A stretch of 64,000 bases of DNA, from NCBI GenBank assembly GCA_038496445.1, contig JALMLS010000309.1, positions 186,001 to 250,000 of the forward strand, given 5' to 3'. Source of the DNA: Trichosphaerium sp. ATCC 40318 (lineage: Eukaryota; Protista; Tubulinea). The notes under the pieces were generated by a model, which saw nothing but the letters and a program-made list of their open reading frames with translations, was not told the DNA's origin and searched no databases. Below are positions 1,434-40,894 of the stretch, one piece after another. Position 1 is the stretch's first letter, and the number at the start of each line of letters is the position of its first letter. Both the position numbers and the translations under genes were made by a program.

Positions 1434-2972
1434 TTGTTTAGTTTAGAAGGCAGTTTGCTATGTCTACCAACAGAGATTCTAGTTCAGATTTTCGAGCTAG
1501 TTCCAAAATCATTAAAAGCACTAGTTAACACATGCTATGATTTCTATCTAATCATGCGTGATGTCACTGGGTACCCATTTATTGTAGTAAGATCTCTTCA
1601 TGCCGCGAAAACGATTGCCAAATACCCTGGGGTTCTCAAGCATTCAGCAATTTCTGTGGACAGAGCTGTTTACTCTCATATTGTTCCAGTGATTAAAGCT
1701 CTTGCTGGTGCCCGTCAACTCAATATTAGATATTCGGGTATCAAAGACAAGGATATATTACCTCTCACCAATATTCGCTCTATCAACCTCGAAGGCACCT
1801 CAGTATCGAACGCTTGTCTAAAACAATTTTCTGGTGTTCACACAATAAGTCTAAGCCTCACAAACAACATTAGAGGTGACGGCGTTAAAGTACTTGCTGG
1901 TGTTCATACTATTGATCTTGGCTATACCAAAGCGAATGATACTGGTATTCAAGCACTAGCAGGCGTTCACAAGATCGATTTAAGACACACGCGTACAGTG
2001 ACAAATGAAGGAATTAAGGCACTTGCTGGCGTTCATACGATAAATCTATCCCATACAAAAGTCAGAGATACTGGGCTCCAAGCTCTTGCTGGGGTTCATA
2101 CTATTAGCTTGGATTATTGCCAGCTTATAACAAATGAAGGTGTGAAATCTCTTGCTGGAGTTCACACAATTAACCTCGAAAATACAAACATTACTGACGC
2201 TGGTATTATTGAACTATCTGGCGTACATACAATTCATTTACAGGACACACAAGTAACAGATGACGGTATATTGGCATTGGGAGGTGTACATTCGATATAT
2301 TTACAAGGTACTAGCGTCACAGATACAGGAGTTAAGGCACTTGGTGGCGTTCATACTATCAACTTGGATAGGACAAGGATAACTGGGGAGTGTCTATCAG
2401 CTCTTGCTGGTGCTCACTCTGTTTCATTGCAACGCACTACTATCTCAGGAGAGCATCTCGAAAAACTTGCTGGGGTTCACACAATTGACTTAGCACGGGC
2501 CACAACATCAGTTAAAGGCATAGTAGCACTTGCAGGTGTACATACAATTCAGTTACAAAATTGTCCAGCCATGTGGGGTTACAAAGACACAGCTGACAAA
2601 ATTGTCAAAGCGCTTGCTGGTGTTCATACAATTGGCCTATACAGGACTGATGTATCTGATGAGGGTGTTAAAGCATTGAGTGGAGTACATGAGATAGACC
2701 TTGGTCATACAAGAGTTACAGACGAAGGGTTGAAAGCGCTAAAAGGCGTTCATACTATTTGCTTAGCTGGCACAAAGGTAACAGATAAGGGTATGCTAGC
2801 ACTTCAAGGTGTTCATACCATAAAGGTATGGGATACAAAGGTAACAAAAGAAGGTATAAGGCAGCTTTGCATGTCAGGTGTGAGTACTATGTATGTGAGT
2901 GCCGCACAAATAGCTGAGAGCGAACAGGCGCATCTACGCAAAAATTATGGAGTAGAGTTCGTATGTGTGTAG
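1434..2972 (+). CDS. F-box + leucine-rich repeat protein (about 18 repeats of 21-22 aa)
   Basis: N-terminal LLCLPTEILVQIFELV...LVNTC is F-box-like. It is followed by repeats LAGVHTIxLxxTxVTDEGVKA in one uninterrupted 1.5 kb ORF. True start unresolved (the ORF begins at TTG, so a small upstream exon is possible). Confidence 0.85.
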   Translation: MFSLEGSLLCLPTEILVQIFELVPKSLKALVNTCYDFYLIMRDVTGYPFIVVRSLHAAKTIAKYPGVLKHSAISVDRAVYSHIVPVIKALAGARQLNIRYSGIKDKDILPLTNIRSINLEGTSVSNACLKQFSGVHTISLSLTNNIRGDGVKVLAGVHTIDLGYTKANDTGIQALAGVHKIDLRHTRTVTNEGIKALAGVHTINLSHTKVRDTGLQALAGVHTISLDYCQLITNEGVKSLAGVHTINLENTNITDAGIIELSGVHTIHLQDTQVTDDGILALGGVHSIYLQGTSVTDTGVKALGGVHTINLDRTRITGECLSALAGAHSVSLQRTTISGEHLEKLAGVHTIDLARATTSVKGIVALAGVHTIQLQNCPAMWGYKDTADKIVKALAGVHTIGLYRTDVSDEGVKALSGVHEIDLGHTRVTDEGLKALKGVHTICLAGTKVTDKGMLALQGVHTIKVWDTKVTKEGIRQLCMSGVSTMYVSAAQIAESEQAHLRKNYGVEFVCV

Positions 2973-3086
2973 ACTGCGATATTTTATACAATGTAAAAAC
3001 ATCTGTTTCCTAACGTCACTTGGATTGTAAATACACGATACTGCAAGTTTTTTTCTTAAGTTCGATGGTCTTGTTTGTATTTTTTC

Positions 3087-4030
3087 TTAACCTTCTTTGG
3101 GAACAAAAGGCTGTAGGTGGCCTTGCTTAAAGATAATTAAGCATCCATCTTTAGTTGTACGTTTGCATTTGTTTCCTTCGTCAGAAGGTGGTAGACGTAA
3201 CCAAGAATGTTTAACGCAATCTTCGTCACCTGGTAGAAATAAGGATTCAAAAAAAAAACCAAAGCTTGCTGTTTTGATTTCGTACCGTTTTCACTCTTGA
3301 AACTACCCTCAACAACAAACAACTCTTCGCCACCCCATCCTACAACCCAGTCAATGCTAGAGCCAGGAGCCCATTTTTCCATCCACATGTGCTCTTTTGT
3401 TTTCTTATTCTGGAATAATTCCAAAATCTGTCTTCCTAATTTTCGCGTCACGTGATTACTCAAACCGATATTTTTATGTCTATATAAAGACGTACCATCT
3501 TTTAAAGTCTTCCAAAGCTTCTCATCCTTCCAATTAATGGCTACAGGGTCCTTATCGTCTTTATCAATTGCGAACATTGATTTTCCATAAATTGTAGTTC
3601 CAGTTTCAATACACGGCTTGTGCGAACTCCCAATGGGAAGTCTAACATATGAACCAGCCGAATAAGTTACTCCTTCGTCGTGTACTTCTCCATCTAGCAC
3701 AAAATACTCTTCACCACCTGAAAAATTATAAAGACAAACTCGCCAAGCTCAAAAGTACCTATGTGAGTGTGGTTTGGTATGTTTAAACCAGCGCTTAGTT
3801 CCATCAATGCTGTGTTTCTACCCGCTGAAAAATTTCAGTGTAAAAGCTGTTTCTAGGTGAGCACGTACGGTTTTTTCCGATATCAAAGTAACGTGCTTTG
3901 AAGCCTTTCATTGGTTCGACCGAAATAAGATCAGAGGCTTTTGCTGACGCTCTAGTCGAGTAAATAGAGTTTAGGGGTTGCATGGGTATGACGCGTGGTA
4001 GTTAGATGCTGGTACAGGTTTGTTTACCAT
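3087..4030 (-). CDS. ChrR-like double cupin protein (spliced)
   Basis: GGEEYFVLDGEVHDEG...GSYVRLPIGSSHKP and GGEELFVVEGSF. Removing the GT-AG intron at about 3231-3285 gives HSWLRLPP...GCLIIFKQGHL, the ChrR cupin C-terminal pattern. Confidence 0.8.
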
Positions 4031-4380
4031 TTTCGGTTTTTGTGACAATATGTGTGAATTGAGTATCGCTTTCCAAGGGTAGATTCAGCTACATAAAGCC
4101 ATTTACAAGTTGGGCGGTATCCTTTTTTGGATAGAGAACAGTTAAAGATTCCATATTTGCACTAGTGCTCTATAAGCCAACAAGCAAAAACGACACCATG
4201 TAACATTAATATGTGCTCTTACTTTCTTTTTGAAAAAGTTGGCTTCTTTTTCTATGTCTAGACTAAAGCGAAAGTAACAATCATGTATGTGCCGTAATGG
4301 TTTTATTGTTATTCTGGCTGCCCTCTATAAGATAAAACTGAGGTTTACAATTTATGTGATTGTTATTGTTTGTAAAAAGT

Positions 4381-6277
4381 CTATCCTACAATCGTTCCAG
4401 TTGGTGTTAATTCTTCTGACATTGTGTTGTCATAAGGAAACAAGTATTCGTGAATCGAAGAATTAAAGACCACAGCAATACCCACTATGATTAACAAGAA
4501 TAAAACAATAGCTGTCACTACAGATGCAACTATTGGTACTGTATTCTAACAAAAAGTGTTAGAACATAACAAGCAAACACAGAAAAACAACAACATTAAT
4601 CCTCCAAAGAGAGCCAAAAAAACCAAAGATGTTGCTTACCGTTTTTTCTTTACAGTTGAATTCTTGTAAAACAAGCAAGCTATTCTTAGTTACTTCAGCG
4701 ATAATGTTTACACATAAATCAGTGTTTACAATATTCACGTGATTATCTGTTACATTACATTGATCTCCTAACAACAACAAAGAAAGTTAGATGCTATGAT
4801 AGATAGTTAGTGTAACGTCTTCATACCAGCCCATTTAATTATTTCTACTTTTTTTGCAATAGATAGCAAAGACTCATTTAGAGATAGGATACCTCTCAAC
4901 GTAGGACATCCTGATACATGTAAAACACCGCCATTCCATAACAAAGTTCCATTCAGTATAAAATCTCCTACAAAGGAACATCAACGTAATGTTCAACACC
5001 GTATTGTTTAAAGGAATAATTGCTCGAACCAATAATAATTGTGCTCTTATTTAGTTCAAATAAATCAGTTGAATTCAGTAGCTCTTCAAATTCTTCGCCT
5101 GTAAGTTTAACTGTATCCTTGACACGTGATAATTTAGAATAAATACATTCTAGTTTTCAATCGTACCGTGTAAGTACCAATATCTAGCGGACCATAAGTG
5201 CCATTCATCCAAAGTGTAGCATTGGAAAAGTCCTTATCCATCCGCAGAATGCCACCTCTTCCTTCGTCATACACATAAAGATGAGAACTATTCATATTTG
5301 TAGATACATAGAGTGGCTTGATCACATCATCAACATGTCGTACTGTACGTTTATTTCTTGTATCGTGCATAAGAATATCTACTGTATCAATGAATTGAGT
5401 AGCATAAATGATACCATTCAATGAGTCATAGGCGATGTTCGTGCCACGAAATCCTAGTGAAAAGTGCTGTTAGTTCTTAGGAAAAAGCAACTTTTTGCGG
5501 CACCTCTTTCTATTGTTTCGAGTGCTCCTGAATAGACGTTTAACCTTTGAATGGCTGGTCCAGCTATATTAGGGCGTAGTATATACAACCAATCACCGAG
5601 TGTATCTGCAGCAATACCTACAACTTAGTAAACTTTTTTTTTTGCCTTTTACTTTTAAGAGAGGACAGATGTTGACGTACTGAAGATTCCTTCCATAGGA
5701 GATGACGTTAAACGCGTTGGATGCTTCTGGAAGCCATGGAAAAGAGATATATACCATATATCCTCATTATCGGAGAAATACAAGCGTCTTTTTGATTCAT
5801 CAAGTTCAAGGGCGCTGATTCTTGTCCACTTTTTACGCTCAACAGAGTATTCTGTATCATCGAAACCATCGTATTTAATACTACCATATACACAGTTATG
5901 TATTTTTAACAGGTGAGATAAGTAGTGGTTTTCGTACTGTACAATTTGGCCACCAGTAGAAGCTTCGTTCGTAGATAGATATATATTAAAAGTATCTTGA
6001 TCAATAGAAATGTCGTTCATCACGTGTGTAGGTTCAACTATCGCGTAAAAAACACGGGACATTGCGTCATCGATATCTTGATTGATATGTTTTACAGTAA
6101 CGTCACGTGATTGCGTCCCCGAAGCAAATACAAGAGAATCGCACTAAAATGTTTGTAAGGATACTAAACGATTGAGGATCTACTAGATACTTTTTTCCGC
6201 CTTTTTCTACGTACATGGGATGGTACTATCGAAATGGCGATAATACCGATAACGCTAAAAATATCTACAATACGCAT
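4381..6277 (-). CDS. Type I membrane protein with YWTD/NHL-like beta-propeller ectodomain (spliced)
   Basis: Signal peptide MRIVDIFSVIGIIAISIV; propeller-like blades (ALELDESKRRLYFSD, IAYDSLNGIIYAT, LYVYDEG...GPLDI); C-terminal TM segment IVASVVTAIVLFLLIIVGIAVVF; TAG at 4381-4383. Confidence 0.65.
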
Positions 6278-6526
6278 GAACTACAATGAGGAAACTAGCA
6301 AGCTCTCTCGTCGTAGTTAACAGACTTGTGAGTACAAACAAAAGCAAACATTTAGTCAACTATTTTCTATGCTACCATTCTTTTTATGTACCACAGTTGT
6401 CGTACCCCTTTTTTTTTTTTGAAAGACGTATAAGTGTCAGTGCTGATTAAATTGTTATTTCATATCTTCATTATTACCAAATAAATTTAATAATAAGGAG
6501 CGCATTGATAAGATTTTATATAAAAT

Positions 6527-7478
6527 TCACCAATTGAATACAAACTTCTTTGATGGTTTTGGTACATACGGCTCATCTTTATGCTCTTCCCAAGCTTCAC
6601 GCACGTCCTCAAAAGTATAATCCCAATCACCATGGTGACGCATGATGACTGAGGCAATTTCTGTGATGTGTTCAAAAGTGACTTGATCGACTACCTTGTC
6701 ATGATAAATCTCTATCACACTCTTCATTTTAGAGAAATCTAAAGACCACGATGATTTAGGACCATCTGAAGATATTTCAAACACAGTGTTATCGTCAACA
6801 TATACCCTTACACGCTTACTACGTTCCCATGGAGCAAAACAATCAATTGAGAGCTTGATTGGAGAAGTGCCTTGCTCAACTCTTCGTGGGAAAAACATAC
6901 ACTCTGCCTCGCAGGTAAAGTACACATCAGGTCCTCCACAGACCCCACCTGGCTCCGTTATGGTTTCTGAAGAATTTTTAGTATAGTATGCAAAGTTTCT
7001 GACATGTTTTGGTAGATTGTTGTGGCACTCAAGAAGCTCCGCTTCAAGTTTAAGTTTGGTTGCAGCTTCTTTTGTGTTGTTCAATGATAATGCCTTGTAA
7101 GCACGTGATAATCCTTGAAAATGATCGTAATCAAATTGAAGACGATTTTGTAGAAACTGACGAATATCAGAAGAGTCCAAAGGCGGTTTGTTTTGTTGTT
7201 TGTTCGCATCGTCATTTTCACTTTGTTTTTCGAATTTGGTGTTGTAGTAGTATCTGTGAGGTGAGTTTGCTTCTAACACTGCACAAAACGTTTTATTGAC
7301 GGTAATCTAAACAAGAGTTGTCAAATTAACTTGGCTATTTTTAAAAGTGACGCCAAACTGTGCGAATGTATTATTTGCGCGTAGTAAAAGCGATTTGATG
7401 ATGTTTTGAGGAGTTTGAGTTTAAAATACCGAAAAATGATTAAAACCTGGTTCTAGAGGCGGTCAATAGCGTACCCAT
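6527..7478 (-). CDS. Hypothetical protein of about 250 aa, copy A of an inverted pair
   Basis: ORF 6527-7279. A predicted 4-nt first exon ATGG|gtacg at 7478-7475 splices in frame to the tgcag acceptor, and the same arrangement is conserved in copy B. Confidence 0.75.
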
Positions 7479-8040: not shown

Positions 8041-8274
8041 TTACACTCCTACTTTACGTATAGCATGGGCGAAAGTTGAATCGTTCTTTACAGCATACCC
8101 CTTGAGCGTTTGTTTATCATCCATTTGCATTCCAACAAAAATGAGCGTTTGTTTTTCTACTGGAATACCTTCCTTGTCTTCTAGCTTTTGTTTCACGTTT
8201 TCGATAGTATCAGATGGTTCTACTTCAAGGGTGTATATTTTGTTAGCTCGCACGTTATTGATAAACAGTTGCAT
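8041..8274 (-). CDS. Divergent ubiquitin-like protein (77 aa) without C-terminal diglycine
   Basis: MQLFINN...TLEVEPSDTIENVKQKLEDKEGIP..Q.LIF.G.Q.DD..TL..Y aligns to ubiquitin. It ends IRKVGV*. Confidence 0.85.
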   Translation of the reverse strand: MQLFINNVRANKIYTLEVEPSDTIENVKQKLEDKEGIPVEKQTLIFVGMQMDDKQTLKGYAVKNDSTFAHAIRKVGV

Positions 8275-8384
8275 TGATGTTGTGTTTTTATTGTGTTTGT
8301 TAACTGTTTTTTCTGTATTCTGTTCGTTGAAAGTCACTGGAAAAAACTGTTTCGCGTTCGGTATCATATCTGTTGATTTGGAGT

Positions 8385-8754
8385 ACACGAGATATCAGTC
8401 TATGAAAGTAAAATCTCTGAGAGCAATTATTACACGTGACAAATCACGTGAATTCTGATACTACTTCCAACACCTTCAATCAACTACATCAAATGCTATA
8501 AGTAAAAGTTGGAAAGGAGAAACAGACAGAACTCAGTGTATCAAGAGAGTTTGTAGCACTGAGTAGTATCCTAACAGCGCAACAAACACAAATCGATGAC
8601 AAAGAGAGTGTTGATAGCTTTCTCATTGTCTTGCAACATGAGATTGGGTTCGAATGGCTTGTAAACAATTACAACAGATCAATTACAGACATATACGATG
8701 ATTACTGCGCTAAACCGACACAGATGAAATCCTCATACCTTGAGACTGTACGCT
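8385..8754 (+). repeat. Near-identical direct repeat (partner ~12185-12555) covering the promoter and first exon of the Skp1-like paralogs
   Basis: Base-by-base match with only a few substitutions. Identity falls off at the first intron donor (gtacgct). Confidence 0.95.
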
Positions 8755-10024
8755 ACGTTTATCACTCTCGGGTACTTAAATGCTTTCTAGCTCTTCGACG
8801 CAGTAGCATGCTGTGACTACCTTGATGTTGACAAGAGTGTTACCAAGAAAGCCGCCAATATTCTACAAATTGAAAATGCAACAAAAGATCCAACAATTCT
8901 GGAGTTCAGCTATCCACTATCGTTTGAGTCAAAAGCCGTATTGAACGCGTTTAAAGGAGGTAATAGCATTTCACCAATTTATACTTACTTTCTTAGAGTT
9001 CTTCGTAGACCTCACTGATGATGCGGCTAGAGGGAAGGGAAACGATACTTTCGGTTCTTTTTCTTCAGGTTTCTATAGACCCAGCACCACCACCAGCGCT
9101 ACCTATTACATTTTTTGGCTTTCTAAGGGGAAGTATGGTATAACCTTGGAAGGTCTCAAGAGGATATTTGGTATTGACAAGAAAGTAGCATTTGAACTTG
9201 CAAAAGAATATTTGAGATTAATTTTCAAAACAAAGGAATTGGTTTCCAAAGTTGAACTTAAGGATTGTGATGCTTTGTTACCGTTATGGAAGCAAATAAC
9301 CTATGCGCAGTTAGTTGAGCTATCAACACAAGCTCCTGAAGATAAAGAGTATACAGCGATTGGTGCTGTCATCGCAAAAAACTTGAAGTACTTTTCTCTT
9401 TTTCAGTTTCTTTTGGATATTGTCGAAAGTGAGAACAAGACACATGCCATGAAAATCAAGGAAGATATTGTTTATGCTCTCGTACACCACTCTCATGAGT
9501 ATAACTCAAAGGACATAATGGATACCATTGCTTGTATTCCTCCATCCAGGAGATGGGCAATCATGAATCGTACTGCATTCAGTATGTCATCAGTTCCAAG
9601 AAGAACATACTTCTGGGAAGCAATCAAGTACACTTTTATCCTTTTGTTGTTTAGTTGTACTTACACATACAAAAGGTTAGCTATACTGACAGAGGAACAC
9701 GAGACTAGTCATCCCTTCATGTCTTCATTTGAGCGTGAGCTTTCAGACGACAATTGGAAAAATCCAGAGAAAAACTATTTATCAGGTAGAACGCTATCTG
9801 TATCGATGTACTCTGTCGTTCAGGTAAAGGGATGGCAAGCCAAGTGGTTTAAAAAGACACACGATAATGTTAGGATTGACTGGTACGAATACAAGCACTG
9901 CTGTCTACTAACCATCAATACAAAACAGGGAAAGCAAGAAGTAAATTACATGCTTAGCGGCCAGGGCAAACAGCTGTTTTCGAAACAAAACTGTCCTCTA
10001 CGTTTCTGTTTTAAAAGTGAATAA
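8493..10024 (+). pseudogene. Skp1/BTB-like N-terminal domain protein, copy 1 (TAA at codon 3)
   Basis: ATG CTA TAA at 8493-8501 versus ATG CTA AAA in copy 2. Spliced exon 2 reads LFDAVACCDYLDVD, similar to Skp1 LFELILAANYLDI. Downstream exons are open. Confidence 0.6.
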
Positions 10025-11934: not shown

Positions 11935-12293
11935 TGTTTATTTTATTATATTATTTATGTGCACTACTATAGAGAATATGTGCATCAACACTAATCCCTT
12001 CCTGCTCTCAACATAAACGTTTGAGCTTTGCCATTCATCATTCTTAGTCAACTTGGTTGTTTGCTTTGTTTTACATGTAAAGCAACATTACCAGTCGGAT
12101 TTAAGTAACGTGATGCATGGTATAATTAATCGCTTGTTTTTGGAATAATAGAATTTTCAAAAAAACAGTGCTTGAAGCACGAGATCACTAGATATTCAGT
12201 CTATGAAAGTAAAATCTCTGAGAATAATTATTACACGTGATAAATCACGTGAATTCTGATACTACTTCCAACACCTTCAATCAACTGCATCAA

Positions 12294-13663
12294 ATGCTAA
12301 AAGTAAAAGTTGGAAAGGAGAAACAGACAGAACTCAGTGTATCAAGAGAGTTTGTAGCACTGAGTAGTATCCTAACAGCGCAACAAACACAAATCGATGA
12401 CAAAGAGAGTGTTGATAGCTTTCTCATTGTCTTACAACATGAGATTGGGTTCGAATGGCTTGTAAACAATTACAACAGATCAATTACAGACATATACGAT
12501 GATTACTGCGCTAAACCGACACCGATGAAATCCTCGTACCTTGAGACTGTACGCTAAACCTTTATAGCCATGTTTGTGTATTAAACTTTTATAGCTTCTC
12601 GATGTAGTAGCGTGCTGTGACTATCTTGACTTTGACAGGAGTATCACCGAGAAAGCTGCCAATATCCTACAAATTGAAAACGCAACAGAAGATCCAACAG
12701 TACTAGAGTATAGTTACCCACTATCATTCGAGTCAGCCGCTGTGTCGAACGCTTGTGCCGGAGGTACTTTCTTTTGGTATCAGCAAAAAGTAACTAATCT
12801 TTGCTAGTGTTTTGTGGAGATTCAAACTACATCTTCATAAAATCACTAAATCACCTAATGAACAAATATATTATCAAAATCAATACGACAGGTTTTTACA
12901 GGCTGCTATGTATTGACGAGAAAGTAGCATTTGAACTTGCAAAAGAATACCTCAGATTAATTTTCAACAAGAGGCAGTATACGCTGTCAGGTAAAACGTA
13001 CTCTCCCAGCATTGAATTAAAGGATTGTGGCCTGTTATTACCGTTGTGGAAGCAAATAACATACACACAGCTACTGGAAATATCGAAACAAGCTCCTGAA
13101 GATACAGAGTATACTGCGATTGGAGCTATAATTGTTAAAAATCTTGAGTACTTTTCGCTCTTTCAATTTCTTTTGGATATTGTCGAAAGCGAGAACGAGA
13201 CACATGCTATGAAAATTAAAGAGGATATTGTTTATGCTCTTTGTCATCATTCTTCCTCGTATAACGCAAAGGCTGTGATGGATACTATTGCTTGTATTCC
13301 TCCATCTAAGAGATGGGAGATCATGAATCGTACTGAACTGCAGATGTCAAGAGTTCCTCGAACAACCTACTTCTGGGAAGCAGTCAAGTACGCCTTACCA
13401 CTATTCTTGTAGATTTAAATACAACTAATACTGTTGAATAAAGGTTAGCAATACTCTCGAAAAAGTACAAAACAGGAAACTCTTTCATGTCCCATTTTGA
13501 ACGTAGCATTGATGACACTTGGAAGGATACCAAATCGCCTTTATCTGTTAATAAGCCAGCGTCATACTCTACCGTGGAAGTGAAAGGATGGAAGGCCACC
13601 TGGTTTCAATCGCCACATAATAGCACCACAGTTGATTGGTACAAAAGCTGTTCAGGTTTCTAA
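12294..13663 (+). CDS. Skp1/BTB-like N-terminal domain protein, copy 2
   Basis: MLKVKVGKEKQTELSVSREFVALSSIL...|LLDVVACCDYLDFD. Paralogous to 8493-10024, with a shorter C-terminus. Confidence 0.65.
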
Positions 13664-14595: not shown

Positions 14596-15770
14596 TGAAA
14601 GAGTAATGATTTGATGTGTTTACAAGAAATGACGTTGACTCATAAAAAAAAAGAAAACACAATTTGAGACACGTTAAATGAACCAAAGCATGAAAAAACA
14701 AATGGATACACCACACGACACACCAACCGCGACTTTATTTATTCAATACGACACAGTACACGAAATTGTTTGTAAAGCCTTTCACACATGTACATACAAA
14801 CAAGTGTGCTCATGGGTACGTCCATTGATCGCCTCTAGAACCGAGTTATAAATCATTTCGGTATTTTAAACCTCAAACTCCTCAAAACATCATCAAATCG
14901 TATTTGCTACGCGCAAATCATACATTCGCACAGTTTAGCGCCACTTTTAAAAAATAGCCAAGTTAATTTGACAACTCAACCGAGTTAACTCTTCTTTTTG
15001 CTTAGATTGCCGTCAATAAAACGTTTTGTGCAGTGTTAGAAGCAAACTCACCTCACAGATACTACTACAACACCAAATTCGAAAAACAAAGTGAAAATGA
15101 CGATGCGAACAAACAACAAAACAAACCGCCTTTGGACTCTTCTGATATTCGTCAGTTTCTACAAAATCGTCTTCAATTTGATTACAATCATTTTCAAGGA
15201 TTATCACGTGCTTACAAGGCATTATCATTGAACAACACAAAAGAAGCTGCAACCAAACTTAAACTTGAAGCGGAGCTTCTTGAGTGCCACAGCAACCTAC
15301 CAAAACATGTCAGAAACTTTGCATACTATACTAAGAATTCTTCAGAAACCATAGCGGAGCCAGGTGGAGCCTGTGGAGGACCTGATGTGTACTTTAGCTG
15401 CGGGGCAGAGTGTATGTTTTTCCCACGAAGAGTTGAGCAAGGCACTTCTCCAATCAAGCTCTCAATTGATTGTTGGGCTCCATGGGAACGTAGTAAAGCT
15501 ACTACAATAAGTGTAGATGGTCATACAGTCCTTCAAATAACTTCAGATGATCCTAAATCATCGTGGTCTTTAGATTTCTCTAAAATGAAGAGTGTGGTAG
15601 AGATTTATCATGACAAGGTAGTCGATCAAGTCACTTTTGAACACATCTCAGGTATTGCCTCAGTCATCATGTACCACCATGGTGATTGGGATTATATTTT
15701 TGAGGGCGTATCTGAAGCTTGGGAAGATAATAAAGATGAGCCGTTTGTACCAAAACCAAAGACAAACTTT
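14596..15770. repeat. Right arm of the inverted segmental duplication
   Basis: Reverse complement of 6540-7699. Confidence 0.95.
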
Positions 15771-15785
15771 TTTTCATTTCAATAA
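14812..15785 (+). CDS. Hypothetical protein of about 250 aa, copy B of the inverted pair
   Basis: ATGG|gtacgt at 14812-14815, intron 14816-15033, then ORF to TAA at 15785. Confidence 0.75.
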
Positions 15786-16107: not shown

Positions 16108-16939
16108 ATGGCATGTGGGATGGAGCCAACGGTAAAAAGGAAGGTAAATGCTTTGTTTTATCAAATTCCTCGTTAAAACAAGTGTAAAATAGATACATTC
16201 CACAATAACATGTTGTGACGTATTACTACGCCTTCCACTAGAGCTACAGCTTGATATTATCGATTTAGATGCAGAAGTTTACATAAAGTGGCCTCTTTTA
16301 TCCAAATATACAGCTACAACAACAAGGTTCAATAGTGATTTGGAAAGACAAGGGAAATGGCTGAAATACAAGCTTTTGCCTGATGAAGGTAATGGCACGC
16401 GTTCCATATTTAAGGTTGTCTGTCAGGAGTATTCTATACGCGGTAAGGTAAATGGAGAATACAAATGGTGGCATCCTACAGGTGAATATGGGTGCAGTCA
16501 TTTCGTAGACGATGTTATACATGGCCTATCAAAAGAGTGGTATGATAGCGGTCAGTTAGCTGGATGTTGTACTTTTGTAGATGGTAAGGCTGAAGGCCAG
16601 TGTAGTGAGTGGCATAAAAACGGGCAATTGAAGAAACAGTTTAACCAAGTTAAAGGCAGTTATGAGGGAGAGTACAACGAATGGCATGAAAATGGACAAT
16701 TGTTAGAAAAGAGCAATTATGTTAATGATAAATTGGAAGGGGAGTGCAATGAGTGGTATGATACTGGCCAATTGCTTGAAAAGTGTTATTACGTCAATGA
16801 TGAGCTTACAGGAGAGTACAAAACGTGGTATAGAAACGGACAATTGAAGCAACAAGGCACCTATAATAAGGGCAAGCTAGAAGGAGAGTATAGAGAGTGG
16901 GATCCAAATGGACAATTAACCCAGTCTAAGTATTTCTGA
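16108..16939 (+). CDS. F-box-like + MORN-variant (YwqK-like) repeat protein
   Basis: Exon 1 16108-16143 and intron 16144-16192, then LLRLPLELQLDIIDL and repeats GEYxEWYxNGQLxExxxYVNxKL. Confidence 0.85.
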
Positions 16940-17318: not shown

Positions 17319-18557
17319 ATGGAACTATCACAAGACGTGCGTACCATCAACTTTCACCCAAATAATAACAAAAACCAGATAAACGACACGGAATCGGATA
17401 GATATGGGTTGTTACAGCTTCCAATTGAGATACAAATGTATATTATGGATTTAAGCACATCAGTTTATGTTATTTGGCCTCTATTATCCAGACAAGCAGC
17501 TGTGACATCCCGTTACGACAGTGCGTTGGATAAACATGGATTATTTAAACGTTGGCATAAAAACGGTCAACTTTCCACGAGATGCCTTTTTGTCAACGGT
17601 TTACTCGAAGGAGAGTATATTGTGGCGTCTCAAACAGTATCAACACAAACTATCAGCATGTCCGCACAACAAAAAAATGTACAATCAAACTACCCAAGCG
17701 CCTTCGTTTCAGAGCTTGCAGTTAGTGGTGAAGCATCAAGTGACTTTGACAGTAACGAAGAGGCGATTGACAAACAAGAAAGCCGCGAAGAAGATACTAG
17801 CAATGGTGAAGAAACATCAGAAACAAGTCAAGATGAAGAAAACAGCGACATTGATAAAAAAGTCAACGATGCAGAAGACTCACACGCTGAGCAAGAGCCT
17901 CCTTACATTGTTGATTCTGAAGAAGACAATATTGACGATGTGAGTGTAACCGTACCGGAGATTACAGGACATTTCTATGGACCTGATCGTATTTTTTCAA
18001 TAAGAGAAGAAATCAATAAAATATTACAATGGACGCCTACAGGTGTTGGTTTCTGGCCATTTCACATCTACAAAAAGCGATGGCTTGCAAGTCCAAGGTA
18101 TAGTTTTATGCAGATATACGCACAAGGAGAAGGCAACAAATACACAGACGCATACCTGATGATATGGGAAGATCAATGTGGTACGTTTTCAAAAAGATCT
18201 TTTGTTGTTTGCTCTTGACTTTGTTTTTAACCCTTTTCAGGACCTGTTGGATTTCCTACACACTTGATTTGCTTAGTTTCAGGCTGTGAATATAAATGGG
18301 TTATGGGTAGATCTAGTAGGAGGTTGACAAAAGCAAAAGTTCGGTTAGTTGCACTTGAAGACAGCACTTACGAAATTCCAATGCCTTGTTTTGCAGTTGG
18401 TAGCGATAAGCTTCTTCAATTTGCTAGGTTGCTTTCTCCATTTGTTTCTATAGTACCTCGTGATAGGAACCCACTTTTCGGAGTCGACTTGTTGACCTTC
18501 AAATCTGAGTACCTTGTTTGTAAAGAAAAAAAACAATTAGAAAATTTAAACATTTAA
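17319..18557 (+). CDS. Chimeric protein: F-box + one MORN repeat fused in frame to a paralog of the acidic protein at 38295-39608
   Basis: The 5' part is nearly identical to the 20719 gene up to about 17618. The 3' part matches 38295-39660, including the intron (18181-18240). Confidence 0.75.
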
Positions 18558-20718: not shown

Positions 20719-21651
20719 ATGGAAACACAACTAGAGGTATTAAGCAGTATACAAATTAAGATAAACGATGCAGAATCGGAGGACCTTGGGTTGTTACAGC
20801 TTCCAATTGAGATACAAATGTATGTTATGGATTTTAGCACATCACTTTATGTTATTTGGCCTCTATTATCCAGAAAAGCAGCTGTGACATCCCGTTACGA
20901 CAGCGCGTTAGATAAACATGGATTATTTAAACGTTGGCATAAAACCGTCGGTCAACTTTCCGCGAGATGCCTTTTTGTCAACGGCAAACGCGAAGGAGAG
21001 TACAACGAGTGGTTTGAAAATGGACAAGATAAGTTAATATGCTCTTACACCGATGGTAAAATCGAAGGAGAGTACAAAGATTGGCATGAAAATGGAAACC
21101 TTAGGCTAGTGCGCTCTCATATCAATGGTAAACGAGAAGGAGAGTGCATGAAATGGCACCGTAATGGAACATTGTACAAGAGTTCGTTTTATACACATGA
21201 CAGACTCGAAGGGGAAAGAAGGATCTGGTACATTAGCAGAAAGTTGCGTGAGGATTCCTTTTATGTAAATGGTTTGTTAGATGGAGAATACAAGCATTGG
21301 CGCTCTAACGGAAACTTACGTATTCATTGCTTCTATAAACAGGGTATCCTTGATGGAGAAAGCAAAAGTTTTTATAATTCCGGATACCTTTATTATCAAC
21401 GGTTTTATGTTAATGGTGAGAAGGAAGGAGAGCATAAAAGTTGGTACCAACATGGTCAACTATGTGATCAAAGCTTTTATGTAAAAGGGAAACTCCATGG
21501 AGAGTATAAAAGGTGGTACGAAGACGGTTCATTAAATGCGCATTGTTTTTACATAAACGATGAGCGCCATGGAGAGTATAAGTGTTGGTGTTATAATGGA
21601 GAACTAGAAGTGCAATGCACTTATAAAAATGGCAAAAAGGTTGAGGAATAG
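20719..21651 (+). CDS. F-box-like + MORN-variant (YwqK-like) repeat protein
   Basis: LLQLPIEIQMYVMDF followed by about 10 repeats of GEYKxWxxNGxLxxxxFYxNG; intronless. Confidence 0.9.
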   Translation: METQLEVLSSIQIKINDAESEDLGLLQLPIEIQMYVMDFSTSLYVIWPLLSRKAAVTSRYDSALDKHGLFKRWHKTVGQLSARCLFVNGKREGEYNEWFENGQDKLICSYTDGKIEGEYKDWHENGNLRLVRSHINGKREGECMKWHRNGTLYKSSFYTHDRLEGERRIWYISRKLREDSFYVNGLLDGEYKHWRSNGNLRIHCFYKQGILDGESKSFYNSGYLYYQRFYVNGEKEGEHKSWYQHGQLCDQSFYVKGKLHGEYKRWYEDGSLNAHCFYINDERHGEYKCWCYNGELEVQCTYKNGKKVEE

Positions 21652-28267: not shown

Positions 28268-30744
28268 TTACTTGCCCCATCCAAATAATTTGGACATAAT
28301 TTTCTCGATCAATGATATTCTCCTCTGAGAAGTCTTTGGTTTTGTAGATTTCTTCTTCTTACCTGGACAACATTGTACGTCTGCTGCTCCAGGACAAAGA
28401 CCTGCCATAGGTGTAGTACTACACTCTGATACTGGCTTACATCTACCTTGTACACCACGAGCAATACACTCGCCTGTAGACATACCGTAGTTGCCCTACA
28501 AAAAAAAAGTTAGAATAATTTTGCGTTTACCAAAGAAATACTATTTTCGCTTACAAGGAACAGATTGGCTTCAGTGACACGGCGAGCTGCAAGAACGCTA
28601 TTATAAGCACCACCTGCTTTATTAAATCTTCCAAAACCTTCCTTAATGTTGGCTAAGGGAGTATTAGAACTCGACCAAGTAGTACTATCTAAAAGCATGT
28701 ACCAGCTGAAGTTTGAGGATCGTTGGCTCTTTGAAGAATTGTAGAATCCTTGAAGGAATTTGGTCCTATATTAAACGCTAATGATACAAGGGCATCAAAC
28801 TGATAATCTTCCAAAGGTTCTGTGGTGTACTCCCTAAAAGTAATTGAGAAAAAAAACCCAACATCGAAGCACCAAGGCAACGAAAAATATTGACCAATAA
28901 CTCACCTTACAGCCTTTGTATAATCTCCTAGACTTAGATCACCTCTTAGTAAGTCCATACCATCCTTTTCGCTCAAAGGAGCTCTAAAAGTACGCGTCTA
29001 CAATAAAGTTACAATTAAAACCTTGAGAAGGTTGAAAAAAGTGAAGAAAAAAAAATTGCAATAAACAGTGACGTACTGTGCCGGACTCGGTACGTCCAAC
29101 AAATTTTCTGCAATCGTACTTATCATGGGTACATGCGTGACCATATCCTATAGTCTTGTGTCCTGCTACATCATAGTAAAAGTCTGATCTGAATCCTTCT
29201 TCTTGAATTATCAAGTCAATCCCATATTTGCTCACTTCCTTCTTGTAATTTGGAAATTGTGACTTTTTAACACAACTTTAAAAACAACCGGTTAGACTAT
29301 AATTTTTTCAAATGAATTTATGGCAAAACAATCTCAAAAAATGTAACAAAAAAAAAGAGGATTTTTACACAACAGAAAAAACAAAGTTAATAAAATTTGA
29401 AGGAGCAAAGCCGTACCATTGAATTGTAGCGCCATCACGTGGACAATACCCTTTGAAAGCAAAGTTACCTTTTGATAAACAAGTACTCCTCTCAATACAA
29501 GAACCAGAACGTCCTAAACAATCGAATATTTAACAGCAACAAAAAAAAAACCGTTTACCTGGTGGAACATTGCAAGGATTAGCATTTGGATTTAAAGGTT
29601 TATCCTTTTTACTAGGTTTCGTAGGTTTACCAGGGTTATATCCACCCCTGTTCGGCTTTGTCTTCTTAGTCTTTGGCTTTTTATTACAGCACTGAATATC
29701 TGCTGCTCCAGGACAACGACCAGCCTCTGGTCTTCCACCAATGTTTCTGCACTTTGAATTAGAGAAACAGTATCCACTCTTTCCGCTTGTTAATTTACAG
29801 CGTGGTAGTGGTTTTTCTGGTATATCTAATGAAGCACGACAACTAGCACCCTTCCTAAACCCATTGACAGGGCTAGCGTTCATTTTTTTTTGAGTTGTTG
29901 GTCCAAAATCGCCGTCGACTTTTATTTGGTCGTTTGGGTTGTTTGCGTTCCATAGTGTCTGAAATGCTTTTACTGATATCTCAGCGATGCTTGGGGTTTG
30001 AAAAAAGTCATAGTGCATTGGATCCCAAGATCCAAGTTTTTTCCATCCGGCACGTGTTAAACCTGAGTACATCCAACCACTCACACCCTCTAATGTTGAA
30101 GTCAGTGGGAATCGAAACATCTTTTTTTTTTTATTGTCGCACCTTCGTAGACATCTATGCCGGCAGCTGAGTTATGGTTGCTAGAGCCTATTCATAGCGT
30201 CAAAAAGAGTTACAGCTGACTTTGATCATTTTTAAGGACGTACCTGGGTAGGCTGCTGCTGGAATACATGATTGGCCTCTCCACTTGTACAATAGCCATT
30301 GCTGAGCTATTGAACGAAGAGCGCTCGTGAAGTAGATTTTCCCTCGAGGATTGGCTCGAAGAGCTGCAAAAAGTGCATCTGCGGCGTCTGCTTGAAGGAA
30401 TCTATGCTATTGTCACTACAGACAACGTTATTGAACGCTAGTTCGTACGGGAATACGCCATCTTCGTAAGATATCTGTGGATGACCTGCTATTGTCTTCA
30501 AGAGCCCTTTTTTCATGCAGTTTACTTGATTTACGAGCTGCAGACTGAGTCCCTTGACGTGGTACGTAGAACAAAAAAATATTGCAGGTTTTTGGTTGCG
30601 TGGTGTACTTAATACTAGCGCATGGTTTAGTACGCGCTGTGTAGTTTTTCAATACGTACTATCGCCAACAGTTGTCTCCCTGGCATCAACAGTACAAGCG
30701 AATGCAACAAGTACTACGCAAATAACCGCAAGCTCTGTTCTCAT
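28268..30744 (-). CDS. Secreted bifunctional peptidoglycan hydrolase: M15-type Zn peptidase, PG-binding domain, Cys-rich modules, GH24 lysozyme, Cys-rich module
   Basis: Signal peptide; SALRSIAQQW, SNHNSAAGIDV, DPMH; VKAFQTLWN...VDGDFGPTT; CPGAADIQCC; in-frame splices into EEGFRSDFYYDVAGHKTIGYGH, QFDALVSLAFNIG, RRVTEANLF. One junction inside the lysozyme (about 28985-29075) is unresolved. Confidence 0.85.
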
Positions 30745-31146: not shown

Positions 31147-35220
<4,074 letters not shown>

Positions 35221-35417
35221 TACTATTGTTTTAAAATGATTTAGGTGCGAGAAGGCATTGCATTAGACCTCAATTGGCAAAAAACATCGGTTGAGAATAA
35301 TGTCGACTTTTTGTGTTCCTGTACGCACAGCACGTAGACAGTCTCTTATCACTGTTTTGTACAAAAACGCAAGCGTGAAACATGTTAAAGCTGGTTATAG
35401 ATTCTTTATTGGATTTC

Positions 35418-36723: not shown

Positions 36724-37008
36724 GATGGCTGGTTATCGAATAGCACCCAAATAAAAAGAGATTGAGTTGCCGAAAAGTCAAGACGGTTAAATCACGTTTC
36801 TTAAACAGTTTTTCACTGTTGTTTGTTGCCAAGCGCGAAAAGTATGTCGGCGTATCATTTTTGTACATGCGACCGTCCAAACGGTTACGAACTTTTGAGA
36901 GTGTACTTGTTCATGTCACAGGATAGAAAACATTATGTGAATGTTGGTTCATCAAGTTCACCTGAAAAACAGTCAATATTCATCTTGTAAGCTTGACCAA
37001 CGTGTCTC

Positions 37009-38245
37009 ATGACCACACCAACGCTTTTCAGAGTATTTGTGCTCTATATTAGTGCTATCTATATTACACGTGCCTTCAACGGGTTCGACACTACAAATTT
37101 ATTTCCCCGGCCTGGATGCGATAGAACAAGCTTTTCAAAGCTATTTATCTACGGAACAGACGTTACTCTCGATTTAAACGAAGCACCTTTCTTTATACCT
37201 GACGAAGGCAACGACTGGTTTCAGGTGCGCCTAATTTATTTGTTGAAGTAAAGCTCAATTAATCTTTGTGTACAGAAAGACATTTTGGATAGATCAGATC
37301 AAGAAATTGTGGCGTTCAAAGCTTCTGGACTTGACTACTTCAGGTACGAGCGTATAATAATGACTGTACAACGGACTGACGTCGTTGTTAGAAACCGACT
37401 AGAATGGGATTTTAGTGAATCGAATACAGACGTTGAAGTAGGTTCGTAGAGCGCATTGATCGCTTGATAGTGTTTGTGTCTTACTCCTTTTTCTGAAATA
37501 TAGTAAAAGATGGTGCCGAGTGGATCTTGTGGAACCCTCAAAGAACTGGAGGAGCAAGACTCATTTATGGTCACATCAACCCTTCTTGGGGTTACAGACC
37601 TATTCTAGTTTCTGGCGAACGTGTTCCTGATATATGTGGTGCAGTATGGGATGGAGGATATCACATAGTAACTTTTGGTGAAGGCATTCTAGCTAGAGGT
37701 AGGGTGGAATTTTTCCATCTTTCTTAGTTTTTTAACTCTTTTTCGAAGGTACCTGGGGAGGCTCCGAAGGCAGACATGTACCGGAAAATTCTTTATTGTT
37801 CTTTGGAGACTACCTGTTCGTTCTTGGAAGAGGACGTAGACCAATCCAAATCAGTTATATTCCAAATCGTCCAGGTATACCAGATGATGAAGGTTTTTAT
37901 GCAATCCGTTGTAACTCGACGAGTGAAGAGTATGGAGAAGGTGTTATTGCCATCAATATGATTGTATCTCCGCCCGAAGATGGATTTCAAACGTTTAGCG
38001 TTCGTAGTTATCAGTCATTTCCTCGACGTATGGCATGCGGAGAACGTCCTCGTAATGCAAAATGCAGACCAAAACCAAGAAGACGATACCCTTTTGATGA
38101 CTACTACTATGGACACAGACGTTCTTACCGCAGTCACGCCTCGACTAGACCAAGATATGTGACGAGAGATTCAATGACTACGACTACGGTAGTGCAAGAA
38201 ACGAGGACCTGTGGTATTAACACTAAGTTGGATTTGCGACTTTAA
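37009..38245 (+). CDS. Secreted hypothetical protein (multi-exon)
   Basis: Signal peptide MTTPTLFRVFVLYISAIYITRA; ORF pieces separated by GT-AG introns; no recognised domain. Confidence 0.6.
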
Positions 38246-38294
38246 CAAATACTGAAATAAAGTAATTTCCCTGAATGGTGTTTAACAAATTGTT

Positions 38295-39608
38295 TTATTC
38301 TTTATACACAAGTTCCTCAGATTTGAACGTCTTTAGTTCTGCTCCAAAAAGCTTCTTTCTATCGCGAGGTACTATAGAAACAAATGGAGAAAGCAACCTA
38401 GCAAATTGAAGAAGTTTATCTTTGCCAACTGCGAAGCAAGGTACTTCAATTTTAGAGGCACTATTTTCACTTGCTACTAAGCGAACTTGATCTTTTGACA
38501 TCTTCTTGCTAGATCTACCCATAACCCATTTATGTTCACAATCTGACATTAAACAAATCAAGTGTGTAGGGAATCCAACAGGTCCTGAAAAAGATTAAAA
38601 ACAAAGTCAAGAGCAAACAACAAAAGGTCTTTTTGAAAACGTACCACATTGATCTTCCCATATCATCAAGTATGCATCTGTGAATTCTTTGCCTTTTCCT
38701 TGTGCGTATATCTGCATAAAACTGTTCTTTGGCTTTGCTGTGCTTCGCTTTTTGAATACATGGAACGGCCAGTAGCCAACACCTACAGTTGACCATTTTT
38801 GAGCCTCAATGTTTTTAAACAATTTGCTGGTTTCTTCTCTTATTGAAAAAATACGATCAGGTCCATAGAAATGTCCTGTAATCTCCGGCGCGGCTACATC
38901 CGCATCATCATCACATTCTTCAGAATCACATTCATCATTATCGTCATCATCATCCTCACATTCCTCAGAATCACATTCATCATTATCGTCGTCAACATCC
39001 TCGCATTCCTCAGAATCGCATTCGTTATCATCGCCATCTTCTTCATCACTGGCTTCATTATCTTCATCACTGTTTTCCTCAACTTCACTGGTTTCGGAAG
39101 TTTCTTCAGCATCGCTATTATCTTCTTCGTCAATTTCTTGTTCTTCATCACTTTCTTGTTCATCATCACTTGCTTCTTCATTGCTTTCACAGTCGCTTGA
39201 TGCTTCACCACTAACTTCTTCGCTAGCGCTTTGATTCTCTTCGTCGCTGTTCTCTTCACCTGCGTCGTCGCTTGCACTAGCCATGGATTCCTCTTCATCG
39301 CTTACATCTCCGTTTGTACTGGTATTTGTGGATTGTTCTTCATTGTCACTTTCCTCCTCAACAGCAGGCTCTTCTTTCTCTCGTTTGGTCTTGGCTGGCT
39401 TGTTGTTCATTTTTTTTGGTTTTTTACCCTTCTTTACTGGCGTAACTCTTTTGCTTGTAGTTTTTGCCTTGCGCTTTGTTTGTTGTGCACGTTGTTTCTT
39501 TGATGGTTTTGTTACAATTTTCTTTGTTCTTTTATTTCGTGTTTCAAGTTCAGCTACGATTCCGCTTTGTTTGTTAGATTGTTTAGTATTTTTTCGTCTT
39601 GAGGACAT
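38295..39608 (-). CDS. Protein with Lys-rich and Asp/Glu-rich low-complexity regions and an unknown globular C-terminal domain
   Basis: ORF 38607-39608 plus terminal exon 38295-38585. The domain and the intron are conserved in the 17.3-18.6 kb paralog. Confidence 0.8.
38900..39030 (-). repeat. About three copies of a 39-bp coding tandem repeat (DDDNDECDSEECE)
   Basis: Repeated cattcctcagaatcacattcatcattatcgtc units. Confidence 0.85.
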
Positions 39609-39883
39609 GTTGTTAATAGTTTATGTTGTTTTTGGTTTTGAGATACACAGCGCCACACGTGTCGTCATATTTTTCAGTGAAAACAAAACACTGCACATCC
39701 CGCTCTCTCCGTCACCTCGCGACTCGTCGCAGAGTGGCTTTACGTTTTTACGTACGATAGGAAGTATGAACGTAACAAATATATTTATTGAGCATAAAAC
39801 ACGTGATTTTTCTTCAAACAATAAAATGAGGCTGTCAAATATTTGCGTGTTATTCTCTTACGCTTGAAGCGATGTTTCAACTT

Positions 39884-40894
39884 CTATTTACTGACCACTT
39901 GTTGTATTTGTTCGATCAAGTTACCATTGTTATACGTACATTGAACTTCTAGTTCTCCATCATTGTGCCAACGCTTGTAGTCTCCATGCCACTCATCGTT
40001 TACGTAAAAACCATGCTCATTTAATACACCATCATCATACCAACTCTTGTACTCTCCATGGAGTTTCCCTTTTACATAAAAGCAATGTTCACATAGTCCT
40101 CCATTGTTGTTATACCAACTTTTTTGCTCTCCTTCCTTCTCACCATTAACATAAAACCGTTGATAACATACACGTCCATTGTGATACCATTGGTAGTTCT
40201 TTCCTTCAAGTACACCGTTACTATAAACGCGATGAGCAATTAATATTCCACGAGAACTCCAAGCCTTGTATTCCCCATGTGACAAACCATTTGCATAACA
40301 AGTCTTCACATACAAGTTTCCATTCTCATGCCAACTCTTACTTTCCCCTTCTTCCTTGCCATTTGAGAAAACTTCAAGTCGGCACAAGTTACCATTCTCA
40401 TGCCACTTTGTGTACTCTCCCTCTAGTTTACCATTGAAGTATAAACAATGCACATGTAATTCTTCATTGTCATGCCATTCTTTGTACTCTCCTTCGATTT
40501 TACCATCGGTGTAAGAGCATATTAACTTATCTTGTCCATTTTCAAACCACTCCTTGTACTCTCCTTCGAGTTTACCGTTGACAAAAAGGCATCTCGTGGA
40601 AAGTTGACCGTTTTTATGCCAACGTTTAAATAATCCATGTTTATCCAACGCACTGTTGTACCTGGTTGTCACTGCTGCTTTTATGGATAATAACGGCCAA
40701 ACAATGTATGAGATTGTGCTTAAATCCAATACATCTAGTTGTAACTCAAACGGTAGCTGTAAATCCATTACATCTAGTTGTAACTCAAACGGTAGCTGTA
40801 ACAAGCCACAACAATCTACTTCTGCTTCTGTTATCTTGTTTTTGGTTATTCTCTGATTATTACTGCTGTTTTGTACCTCTTGCTTTGCTTCCAT
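39884..40894 (-). CDS. F-box-like + MORN-variant (YwqK-like) repeat protein
   Basis: Paralog of 20719-21651; intronless; F-box core tandemly duplicated. Confidence 0.9.
   Translation of the reverse strand: MEAKQEVQNSSNNQRITKNKITEAEVDCCGLLQLPFELQLDVMDLQLPFELQLDVLDLSTISYIVWPLLSIKAAVTTRYNSALDKHGLFKRWHKNGQLSTRCLFVNGKLEGEYKEWFENGQDKLICSYTDGKIEGEYKEWHDNEELHVHCLYFNGKLEGEYTKWHENGNLCRLEVFSNGKEEGESKSWHENGNLYVKTCYANGLSHGEYKAWSSRGILIAHRVYSNGVLEGKNYQWYHNGRVCYQRFYVNGEKEGEQKSWYNNNGGLCEHCFYVKGKLHGEYKSWYDDGVLNEHGFYVNDEWHGDYKRWHNDGELEVQCTYNNGNLIEQIQQVVSK

Follow-up and report, generated by a model that had tools for sequence, protein, structure and literature searches.

Why does a short stretch of an amoebal genome hold so many genes that look like parts of a ubiquitin ligase? 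The stretch analysed here, the window, comprises 64,000 nucleotides of the genome of Trichosphaerium sp., a marine amoeba (C25:186001-250000, on scf.00025 of 477,026 bp; contigs are numbered C1 onwards within a 70.28-Mb assembly of 642 contigs). The original prediction read ten features in it as a dedicated Skp1-cullin-F-box (SCF) toolkit. These were seven F-box-like genes (one with leucine-rich repeats (LRR), four with MORN repeats, one with a NuiA-like domain and one carrying a dead ubiquitin-conjugating enzyme (E2)), two Skp1/BTB-like paralogues and a ubiquitin variant. All ten are present at or near the places where they had been put. The explanation that we favour, at a probability of about 0.62, is that very large, lineage-specific families of SCF substrate receptors have been duplicated locally and thus give the appearance of a cluster.

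Receptor-like families are dense throughout the genome

The window encodes the following F-box-like genes.

1369..2972, plus strand: F-box-LRR gene; Pfam LRR_6 79.9 bits; the main exon is the open reading frame (ORF) 1434-2972
16108..16939, plus strand: F-box-like-MORN_2 gene; MORN_2 91.5 bits, module hidden Markov model (HMM) 87.9 bits
17319..18218, plus strand: chimeric ORF with an F-box-like module and one MORN repeat; module HMM 99.7 bits
19095..20096, plus strand: F-box-NuiA-like gene; single exon, 333 amino acids (aa); Pfam F-box-like 25.8 bits, over the cut-off
20719..21651, plus strand: F-box-like-MORN_2 gene; single exon, 310 aa; MORN_2 75 bits
39884..40894, minus strand: F-box-like-MORN_2 gene; MORN_2 91 bits, module HMM 84.4 bits with the first domain split

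The genes at 16108, 17319, 20719 and 39884 have an N-terminal module in common, hereafter the MORN-type module, of which an HMM scan found exactly four copies in the window. Genome-wide densities were estimated from listings of the best matches in each search and from one count of a DNA pattern. At E < 1.5e-10 the MORN-type module is matched at least 150 times, on many contigs (1189 candidates at first look), and all 20 sampled members carry MORN repeats. The back-translated WPLLSK pattern occurs 407 times in the genome against 12 control matches. The exact motif is found in 10 of the 20 sampled members, so the count suggests roughly 800 copies. We estimate that the genome holds about 400-800 copies of the module, a very high number for 70 Mb. 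About 0.7 copies are expected per 64 kb, versus four in the window (rough Poisson P ~0.007).

The other families are likewise abundant. The F-box-like model PF12937 has at least 150 genome matches over the Pfam cut-off (1809 candidates), none of the best 150 of which lies in the window, and the LRR family is matched at about 80 or more places (2226 candidates). Groups of at least three of the best 150 MORN-type matches within 55 kb are also present on C30, C171, C239 and C9. The density that had been taken as particular to this locus is thus largely matched across the genome.

Recent local duplications, which the original prediction had noticed, are confirmed within the window by self-BLAST. 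Three of the four window MORN-type genes are each other's closest relatives. Pairwise ratios of nonsynonymous to synonymous substitution (dN/dS) between paralogues range from 0.12 to 0.74, below 1 throughout, which does not bear out the claim that the paralogues evolve fast. The ratios are 0.5-0.7 for the MORN pair, the F-box module and an orphan ORF pair, and 0.12-0.31 for the POZ-like and NuiA-like pairs. One comparison confined to the MORN repeats was out of frame and is not counted. Judged by these ratios, selection on the paralogues is purifying or relaxed. We conclude that the window shows a modest local excess, produced largely by duplication inside families that are dense everywhere, and no dedicated unit.

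The pattern resembles the expanded F-box families of nematodes and plants and the F-box, MORN and LRR families of amoebal giant viruses, which comprise hundreds of receptors with variable repeats, clusters formed by local duplication and many pseudogenes. Those families, too, are often discussed as candidate recognisers of foreign proteins.

The MORN-type module is predicted to dock on Skp1

The consensus of the MORN-type module (A1) is LLxLPVEIQLDIxDLDxxxYxKWPLLSKQAAxTTRFDxxLNKHGKW. Pfam F-box models matched none of 22 family members at E ≤ 1, and a profile search of the sequences in the PDB returned no F-box protein. A second profile (A2) was built from 20 of the genome's strongest PF12937 matches. 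In an hhalign comparison the MORN-type module aligns with it in register from LPxE to the final Trp, at a weak score (P 0.0027, probability 11%).

Structure prediction gave a clearer signal. Residues 1-80 of the 20719 protein were docked with the organism's own canonical Skp1 (P0001, an MMETSP transcript that agrees by eye with the C137 Skp1 gene over the three exon stretches compared). The predicted complex scored 0.73 (three runs), against 0.13 for the best of three controls. The runs share at least 80% of their contacts, and the partner's predicted local distance difference test (pLDDT) value is at least 58. In a calibration on eukaryotic proteins, 39 of 65 solved pairs for which older structures held no similar complex came up to this mark, as did 2 of 126 unrelated pairs. 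Residues 23-55 of the 20719 protein make the predicted contacts, and on Skp1 these fall at residues 105-168, where F-boxes canonically bind. On this modelling, the MORN-type module is probably a divergent F-box. The assignment of the four MORN genes to the F-box class is thus supported by the predicted Skp1 docking of one of them and not by HMMER.

The MORN_2 repeats (PF07661) of these genes score 75-91 bits and had been called YwqK-type. That label holds as far as the generic MORN_2 class. NCBIfam gave a sub-threshold match to a MORN-bearing Leptospira adhesin model and no match to a YwqK model; one database relative of the genes (P0117) carries the name YwqK from its source. The repeat class is shared with YwqK, and this does not imply an immunity function. 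Outside this genome, neither the 120 listed protein matches nor IMG/VR showed MORN_2 in combination with the divergent F-box specific to this family (LLxLPVEIQLDIxDLD...WPLLSKQAA). A MORN family hundreds strong, with a cryptic F-box that standard profiles overlook, would be newly recognised here if the modelling is right.

F-box-LRR and F-box-NuiA-like genes

The LRR gene probably begins with a 5' mini-exon (ATG 1369, intron of about 59 nt, from 5' exon models). Its main exon encodes an F-box-like N-terminus followed by about 16 'GVHTIxL' LRR_6 repeats. The N-terminus scores 20.4 bits with the Pfam F-box-like model, under the cut-off. It passes the F-box profile test with A2 (hhalign probability 93%, E 2.7e-7). 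Copies that are 93-97% identical to the gene lie at C320:23412-24587 and C39:12841-14424; they are uncollapsed haplotypes or else the product of very recent, dispersed duplication.

The 19095 gene also passes the profile test (probability 90%, E 1.5e-6 against A2), so that both of these genes are F-box-like as originally claimed. An AlphaFold2 model of its protein (12 paralogue rows, mean pLDDT 70) has a disordered region at residues 1-59, F-box helices at 64-73, 76-95 and 98-108, and an alpha/beta domain at residues ~177-333. The proposal that this domain resembles the bacterial nuclease inhibitor NuiA is well borne out. Foldseek against the PDB placed NuiA (2o3b_B) first (E 9.9e-6, probability 1.0) and as the sole match below 0.001. 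VIA aligned 130 of 135 NuiA residues (Z 9.6, rmsd 3.7 Å), and the next entry reached Z 5.2. The top rows of an ESM Atlas shape search were bacterial clusters of the Pfam NuiA family PF07924 (template modelling score (TM) 0.64-0.70 by matched row). At the sequence level, PF07924 had no match at E ≤ 0.01 with the whole 19095 protein or at E ≤ 1 with residues 166-333.

The domain has the same fold as NuiA (2o3b, 1j57) over nearly the whole NuiA chain at 18% identity, and the structural alignment extends to the last residue of both chains. It differs from NuiA in having no match to the Pfam NuiA family and in being joined to an F-box and a disordered N-terminal region. In NuiA, the last residue of the chain supplies a metal bridge by which the EndoG-like nuclease NucA is inhibited (PMC2790893). 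At the place of this metal ligand the 19095 paralogues have Ser in some cases and Met in others. The chain ends directly after DN[S/M] in 19095, three paralogues and P0167, and is extended in five other paralogues. We considered a conserved NuiA-type C-terminal residue as a family-wide feature and rejected it, as only about half of the family ends at DN[S/M]. The C-terminal extension (SCGAGPWNEYYLQKKKNGWK-like) that follows the DNS motif is conserved in half of the F-box-NuiA-like family and absent from the window copy.

The family has about ten dispersed paralogues in the genome. A search of 1.84 billion representative proteins yielded one true relative, a 255-aa protein that shares this layout and is encoded on two contigs (~1.1-1.3 kb) from assemblies of two public sequencing runs. 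The literature that we searched contains no mention of NuiA and an F-box together, and the fusion appears to be previously unreported.

The nearest parallel is the fusion of F-boxes with SUKH domains, which serve in bacterial nuclease immunity and were joined to F-boxes independently in FBXO3 and in fungi (PMC3113570). This precedent, which the original prediction had cited, is real. In FBXO3/SKIP16 and the fungal proteins, as in the 19095 family, a bacterial domain that neutralises nuclease toxins lies C-terminal to the F-box, in the position of substrate recognition (Zhang, Iyer and Aravind 2011, PMC3113570), and such fusions arose independently more than once (PMC3113570). The family described here differs in its NuiA fold, in being confined to this amoeba and one short environmental contig, and in showing no sequence similarity to Pfam NuiA.

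What might such a receptor recognise? The EndoG/NucA/Serratia nuclease family PF01223 was absent at E ≤ 0.001 from an exon-wise six-frame search of the genome, which is weak evidence because short exons could hide it. The absence of an EndoG-type nuclease, if real, is unusual for a eukaryote. As the search detected no gene of this kind in the amoeba, any targets would come from outside. We speculate that the F-box-NuiA-like proteins could be SCF receptors that seize NucA/Serratia/EndoG-type nucleases of ingested bacteria or of viruses for proteasomal destruction, with the F-box-MORN and F-box-LRR families as a possible germline-encoded recognition repertoire. We hold this to be unlikely.

POZ-like genes are not members of the Skp1 family

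The two genes that had been called Skp1/BTB-like are multi-domain genes.

8493..10024, plus strand: POZ-like multi-domain gene, copy 1; from reading of the DNA and a tblastn exon map
12294..13655, plus strand: POZ-like multi-domain gene, copy 2; exons 12294-12548, 12595-12763, 12892-13387 and 13444-13655 or beyond

In the original prediction these were dedicated local Skp1-like adaptors of a fast-evolving defence locus. F-box baits with MORN, NuiA-like or LRR domains, together with a decoy E2 and a non-conjugatable ubiquitin, would there capture toxins, nucleases or viral proteins. The protein of copy 2 has at least 377 aa, with an N-terminal POZ fold, a helical middle domain and a C-terminal part of no known family. 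An AlphaFold2 model of exon 1 (12 family rows, pLDDT 89.7) has the order beta-beta-alpha-alpha-beta-alpha-alpha-alpha. All 50 of the best Foldseek rows are Elongin C, at weak scores (E 0.2-1.5, TM 0.33-0.41). In an exhaustive VIA search of 48,161 chains nearly all top matches are BTB/POZ domains, including the KEAP1 BTB domain (Z 5.7), ASK1 (5.5), NAC1 (5.5), Elongin C (5.2) and Skp1 (1ldk_D, 5.0). The Z values are modest because the model covers part of the domain. A profile search of PDB sequences with exon 1 gave a chance coiled-coil match only, and its language-model neighbours were uninformative.

The POZ fold of the 12294 protein thus stands, and the Skp1 assignment does not. Exons 1-3 have no Skp1, Skp1_POZ, BTB or other Pfam match, and the middle domain has no database homologue and no Pfam match. 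The family comprises at least 16 dispersed loci on other contigs, some with stops, and no intron-less paralogue was found. Genome searches with PF01466 and PF03931 located canonical Skp1 only on C137, C57, C88/C430, C51 and C91, and none in the window. Because they have no Skp1 signature, carry extra domains and belong to a dispersed family, the 8493 and 12294 proteins are POZ-fold proteins outside the Skp1 family and BTB-adaptor-like. Among the cullin adaptors, exon 1 of 12294 matches Elongin C, ASK1, Skp1 and many BTB domains. Unlike Skp1, a single-domain protein of ~160 aa, the 12294 protein has further domains, and its modelled architecture appears closer to that of BTB substrate adaptors.

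The two copies are duplicates (8386-8931 with 12186-12735, 91% identity; 9171-9631 with 12910-13391, 80%). Exon 1 and the DNA upstream of it are ~98% identical (8386-8750 versus 12186-12550; synonymous divergence (dS) 0.04), whereas the remainder has diverged to a dS of 0.8-0.9. The near-identity of exon 1 within a diverged remainder points to recent 5' gene conversion, and the converted copy 1 bears TAA as codon 3 (8499-8501). The remaining frame of copy 1 is open; it is probably a pseudogene or an assembly error.

A Cys-less E2 and a ubiquitin-like gene

Two further genes completed the proposed toolkit.

8041..8271, minus strand: ubiquitin-like gene; 76 aa from MQLF; Pfam ubiquitin (PF00240) 69.8 bits
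25788..26888, minus strand: Cys-less pseudo-E2 of HPM type; six exons, spliced frame open

The dead E2 proves to be an intact gene with exons at 26888-26730 (or 26888-26781), 26668-26543, 26487-26437, 26217-26158, 26079-25965 and 25900-25788. Two donors are possible for the first intron and both leave the frame open, giving 207 or 190 aa. The product matches E2 exons of its own genome (phmmer, small database) at E 3.4e-15 to 4.6e-5. UQ_con (PF00179; genome scan match C25:212155-212226) recognises a 20-aa exon at 19.9 bits, and single exons gave nothing significant against PDB sequences. The stretch RGYLSFKLI aligns with canonical GEICLDIL and places Ser in the column of the catalytic Cys, and HPM replaces HPN. 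The nearest paralogue (C408:22900-23450, the same as C29:72098-72391) also lacks the catalytic Cys (GHFSHSLNIL), so the genome has a small subfamily of Cys-less E2 variants.

The pseudo-E2 can be compared with ubiquitin E2 variants (UEVs) and other inactive E2 variants such as Mms2/Uev1 and Tsg101, which also have the UBC fold without a catalytic cysteine. It differs from them in that the HPx motif and the core around it are retained and Ser occupies precisely the place of the Cys. Its N-terminus is extended by 36-53 aa, and it belongs to a small local subfamily rather than being a UEV orthologue. The N-terminus resembles an F-box weakly (Pfam 13.2 bits, E 0.087; hhalign 1.2%), and the full F-box-like stretch is present only in the longer splice variant. 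The F-box once ascribed to this gene is not supported by these sequence comparisons.

The ubiquitin variant without Gly-Gly (GG) is present as described. The gene ends RKVGV and then a stop, so its product has no C-terminal GG, barring an unrecognised 3' intron. It is a singleton, 52% identical to the canonical ubiquitin loci, with no closer paralogue. It lies head-to-head with POZ-like copy 1. We considered a conserved ubiquitin-like/POZ-like gene pair and rejected it, as the ubiquitin-like gene is not beside the other POZ-like loci. A functional tie of the GG-less ubiquitin-like gene and the Cys-less E2 to the F-box genes is unsupported.

Rearranged and decaying copies

Other duplicated features of the window are as follows.

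6527..7279, minus strand: orphan 250-aa ORF; inverted duplicate at 15033-15785 (plus strand), 92% nucleotide identity
38295..39608, minus strand: Lys-rich/acidic gene with a conserved C-terminal part, downstream of the 39884 gene

The orphan ORF copies flank the ubiquitin-like gene and the POZ-like pair, have no Pfam match and show a dN/dS of 0.64. The 39884 and 20719 genes are paralogues with 79% nucleotide identity, and the 16108 gene plausibly starts at ATG 16108 with a 5' mini-exon, which a 49- or 61-nt intron separates from the main exon at 16193-16939. The first F-box-like helix of the 39884 gene holds a 13-aa tandem duplication (LQLPFELQLDV[M/L]D twice; window 40700-40800, minus strand).

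The 17319 ORF joins an F-box-like module and one MORN repeat in frame with the acidic/C-terminal part of a gene that is intact at 38607-39608. It arose via a deletion of ~1.7 kb relative to the intact gene pair of the 38-41 kb block (40894-38295, minus strand). Self-BLAST matches its parts accordingly: 17377-17617 with 20759-21002 and 40762-40557, and 17945-18538 with 38898-38288. The Lys-rich/acidic gene, which has no Pfam match, is the source of the 3' half. The chimera may be a new gene or a pseudogene.

Are these genes, then, mostly decaying duplicates in a duplication-prone region, non-functional or nearing loss and without a joint mechanism? The codon-3 stop of 8493, the 17319 deletion chimera, the 39884 duplication within an F-box-like helix and the stops in several family members elsewhere would fit, as would the relaxed dN/dS values of 0.5-0.7 given above. 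Yet the majority of the ORFs are long and uninterrupted, the POZ-like and NuiA-like pairs have the lower ratios of 0.12-0.31, and the multi-exon pseudo-E2 retains an open spliced frame. We consider general decay unlikely.

Neighbouring genes and the question of viral origin

The window is ordinary nuclear DNA of Trichosphaerium sp., eukaryotic in character, with short GT-AG introns, no tRNA genes and an even GC content (0.36-0.41). Pfam was run on about 30 ORFs and exon pieces from it, and an exact look-up of two of its proteins returned no entry. Unrelated genes lie between the F-box genes, namely a DEAH helicase, a cupin, a polysaccharide lyase and peptidoglycan hydrolases. Several are of bacterial type:

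3137-3700, minus strand: ChrR cupin
28268-30120, minus strand: Cys-rich secreted proteins, peptidoglycan-hydrolase locus
41199-43158, minus strand: polysaccharide lyase, 100.7 bits

The F-box and MORN genes of the window could themselves be foreign, either acquired from or the remnant of an integrated nucleocytoplasmic large DNA virus. The genome paper reported that F-box and MORN domains outnumbered all others among its putative viral transfers, with best BLAST matches to Indivirus and Pacmanvirus, and read their enrichment as gene transfer from giant viruses (PMC10521059). Amoebal giant viruses typically carry MORN, F-box and LRR families (PMC5753266). Introns are absent from the MORN and NuiA-like genes or limited to one small one, which would agree with such a source. 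The even GC content speaks against it, as do the intron-bearing cellular genes interspersed here (DEAH helicase, POZ-like genes, E2). The Pfam scan contained no viral family, although no search was aimed at viral hallmark genes, and a search of IMG/VR contigs with the MORN-type module, the MORN protein and the LRR protein gave, at limited sensitivity, no relatives. Several hundred dispersed copies fit expansion within the genome better, and any transfer could equally have gone from amoeba to virus. A viral origin is, in our view, unlikely.

Dispersed receptor families or a dedicated locus

Several observations weigh against dispersed families as the whole explanation. Six or seven F-box-type genes of four families lie within ~40 kb, several-fold over a rough average of one per 35-90 kb. 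The docking result that supports the MORN-type F-box registers likeness to solved Skp1-F-box complexes, not binding. Furthermore, POZ-like loci lie within 20 kb of one of the best 150 MORN-type matches at 5 of 16 loci outside the window, versus ~1.3 expected under uniform scatter (rough P ~0.008):

C14:526805-529064: POZ-like locus near a MORN-type match
C28:398658-404264: POZ-like locus near a MORN-type match
C9:424495-429569: POZ-like locus near a MORN-type match
C69:139140-154247: POZ-like locus near a MORN-type match
C4:604257-621710: POZ-like locus near a MORN-type match

This proximity may reflect shared duplication-prone regions or a real functional or regional link.

A defence locus has several points in its favour. 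Genes of four different F-box families stand together with POZ-fold, ubiquitin-like and E2-like genes in 40 kb; POZ-like loci elsewhere are often near MORN-type F-box genes; the NuiA fold is confirmed in a receptor left without an obvious self target, no endogenous NucA/EndoG-family nuclease having been detected; and the SUKH-F-box fusion is a precedent (PMC3113570). Against it, the families are dispersed genome-wide in hundreds of copies, and the POZ proteins lack the F-box-binding domain of Skp1, with one copy bearing an early stop. It is canonical Skp1, encoded on other contigs, that is predicted to bind a local F-box. The ubiquitin-like singleton is unpaired with POZ-like genes elsewhere, dN/dS stays below 1, and unrelated housekeeping genes are interspersed. 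A dedicated SCF toolkit with its own adaptors thus seems quite unlikely.

In the explanation by dispersed receptor families, receptor genes of the F-box-like-MORN_2, F-box-LRR and small F-box-NuiA-like families occur on almost every contig, and local amplification by tandem, inverted and segmental duplication would give the apparent cluster. The N-terminal three-helix F-box of each receptor would dock on the C-terminal helices of canonical Skp1 supplied from other contigs, as predicted in silico for one of them. The MORN, LRR or NuiA-like domain, by analogy with the F-box family, would present the bound protein to the Cul1-Rbx1 ligase. The neighbouring POZ-fold genes would form a separate, dispersed multi-domain family, and the GG-less ubiquitin-like gene and the Cys-less E2 would be singletons or members of small subfamilies. 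Some copies, such as 8493, 17319 and 39884, would be decaying or rearranged.

Implications

Dense families that keep duplicating account for most of what made the window look like a toolkit, and similar stretches of this genome are to be read in the same way. In such genomes, counts of F-box genes that use Pfam alone will fall far short. Free-living eukaryotes repeatedly show large F-box families, which are still poorly understood. From the F-box-NuiA-like fusion comes a hypothesis open to bench tests, in which an inhibitor fold lets a ubiquitin ligase recognise a nuclease. If true, it would be a second independent case, after SUKH in FBXO3, of a bacterial anti-nuclease domain made into the substrate trap of a ubiquitin ligase.

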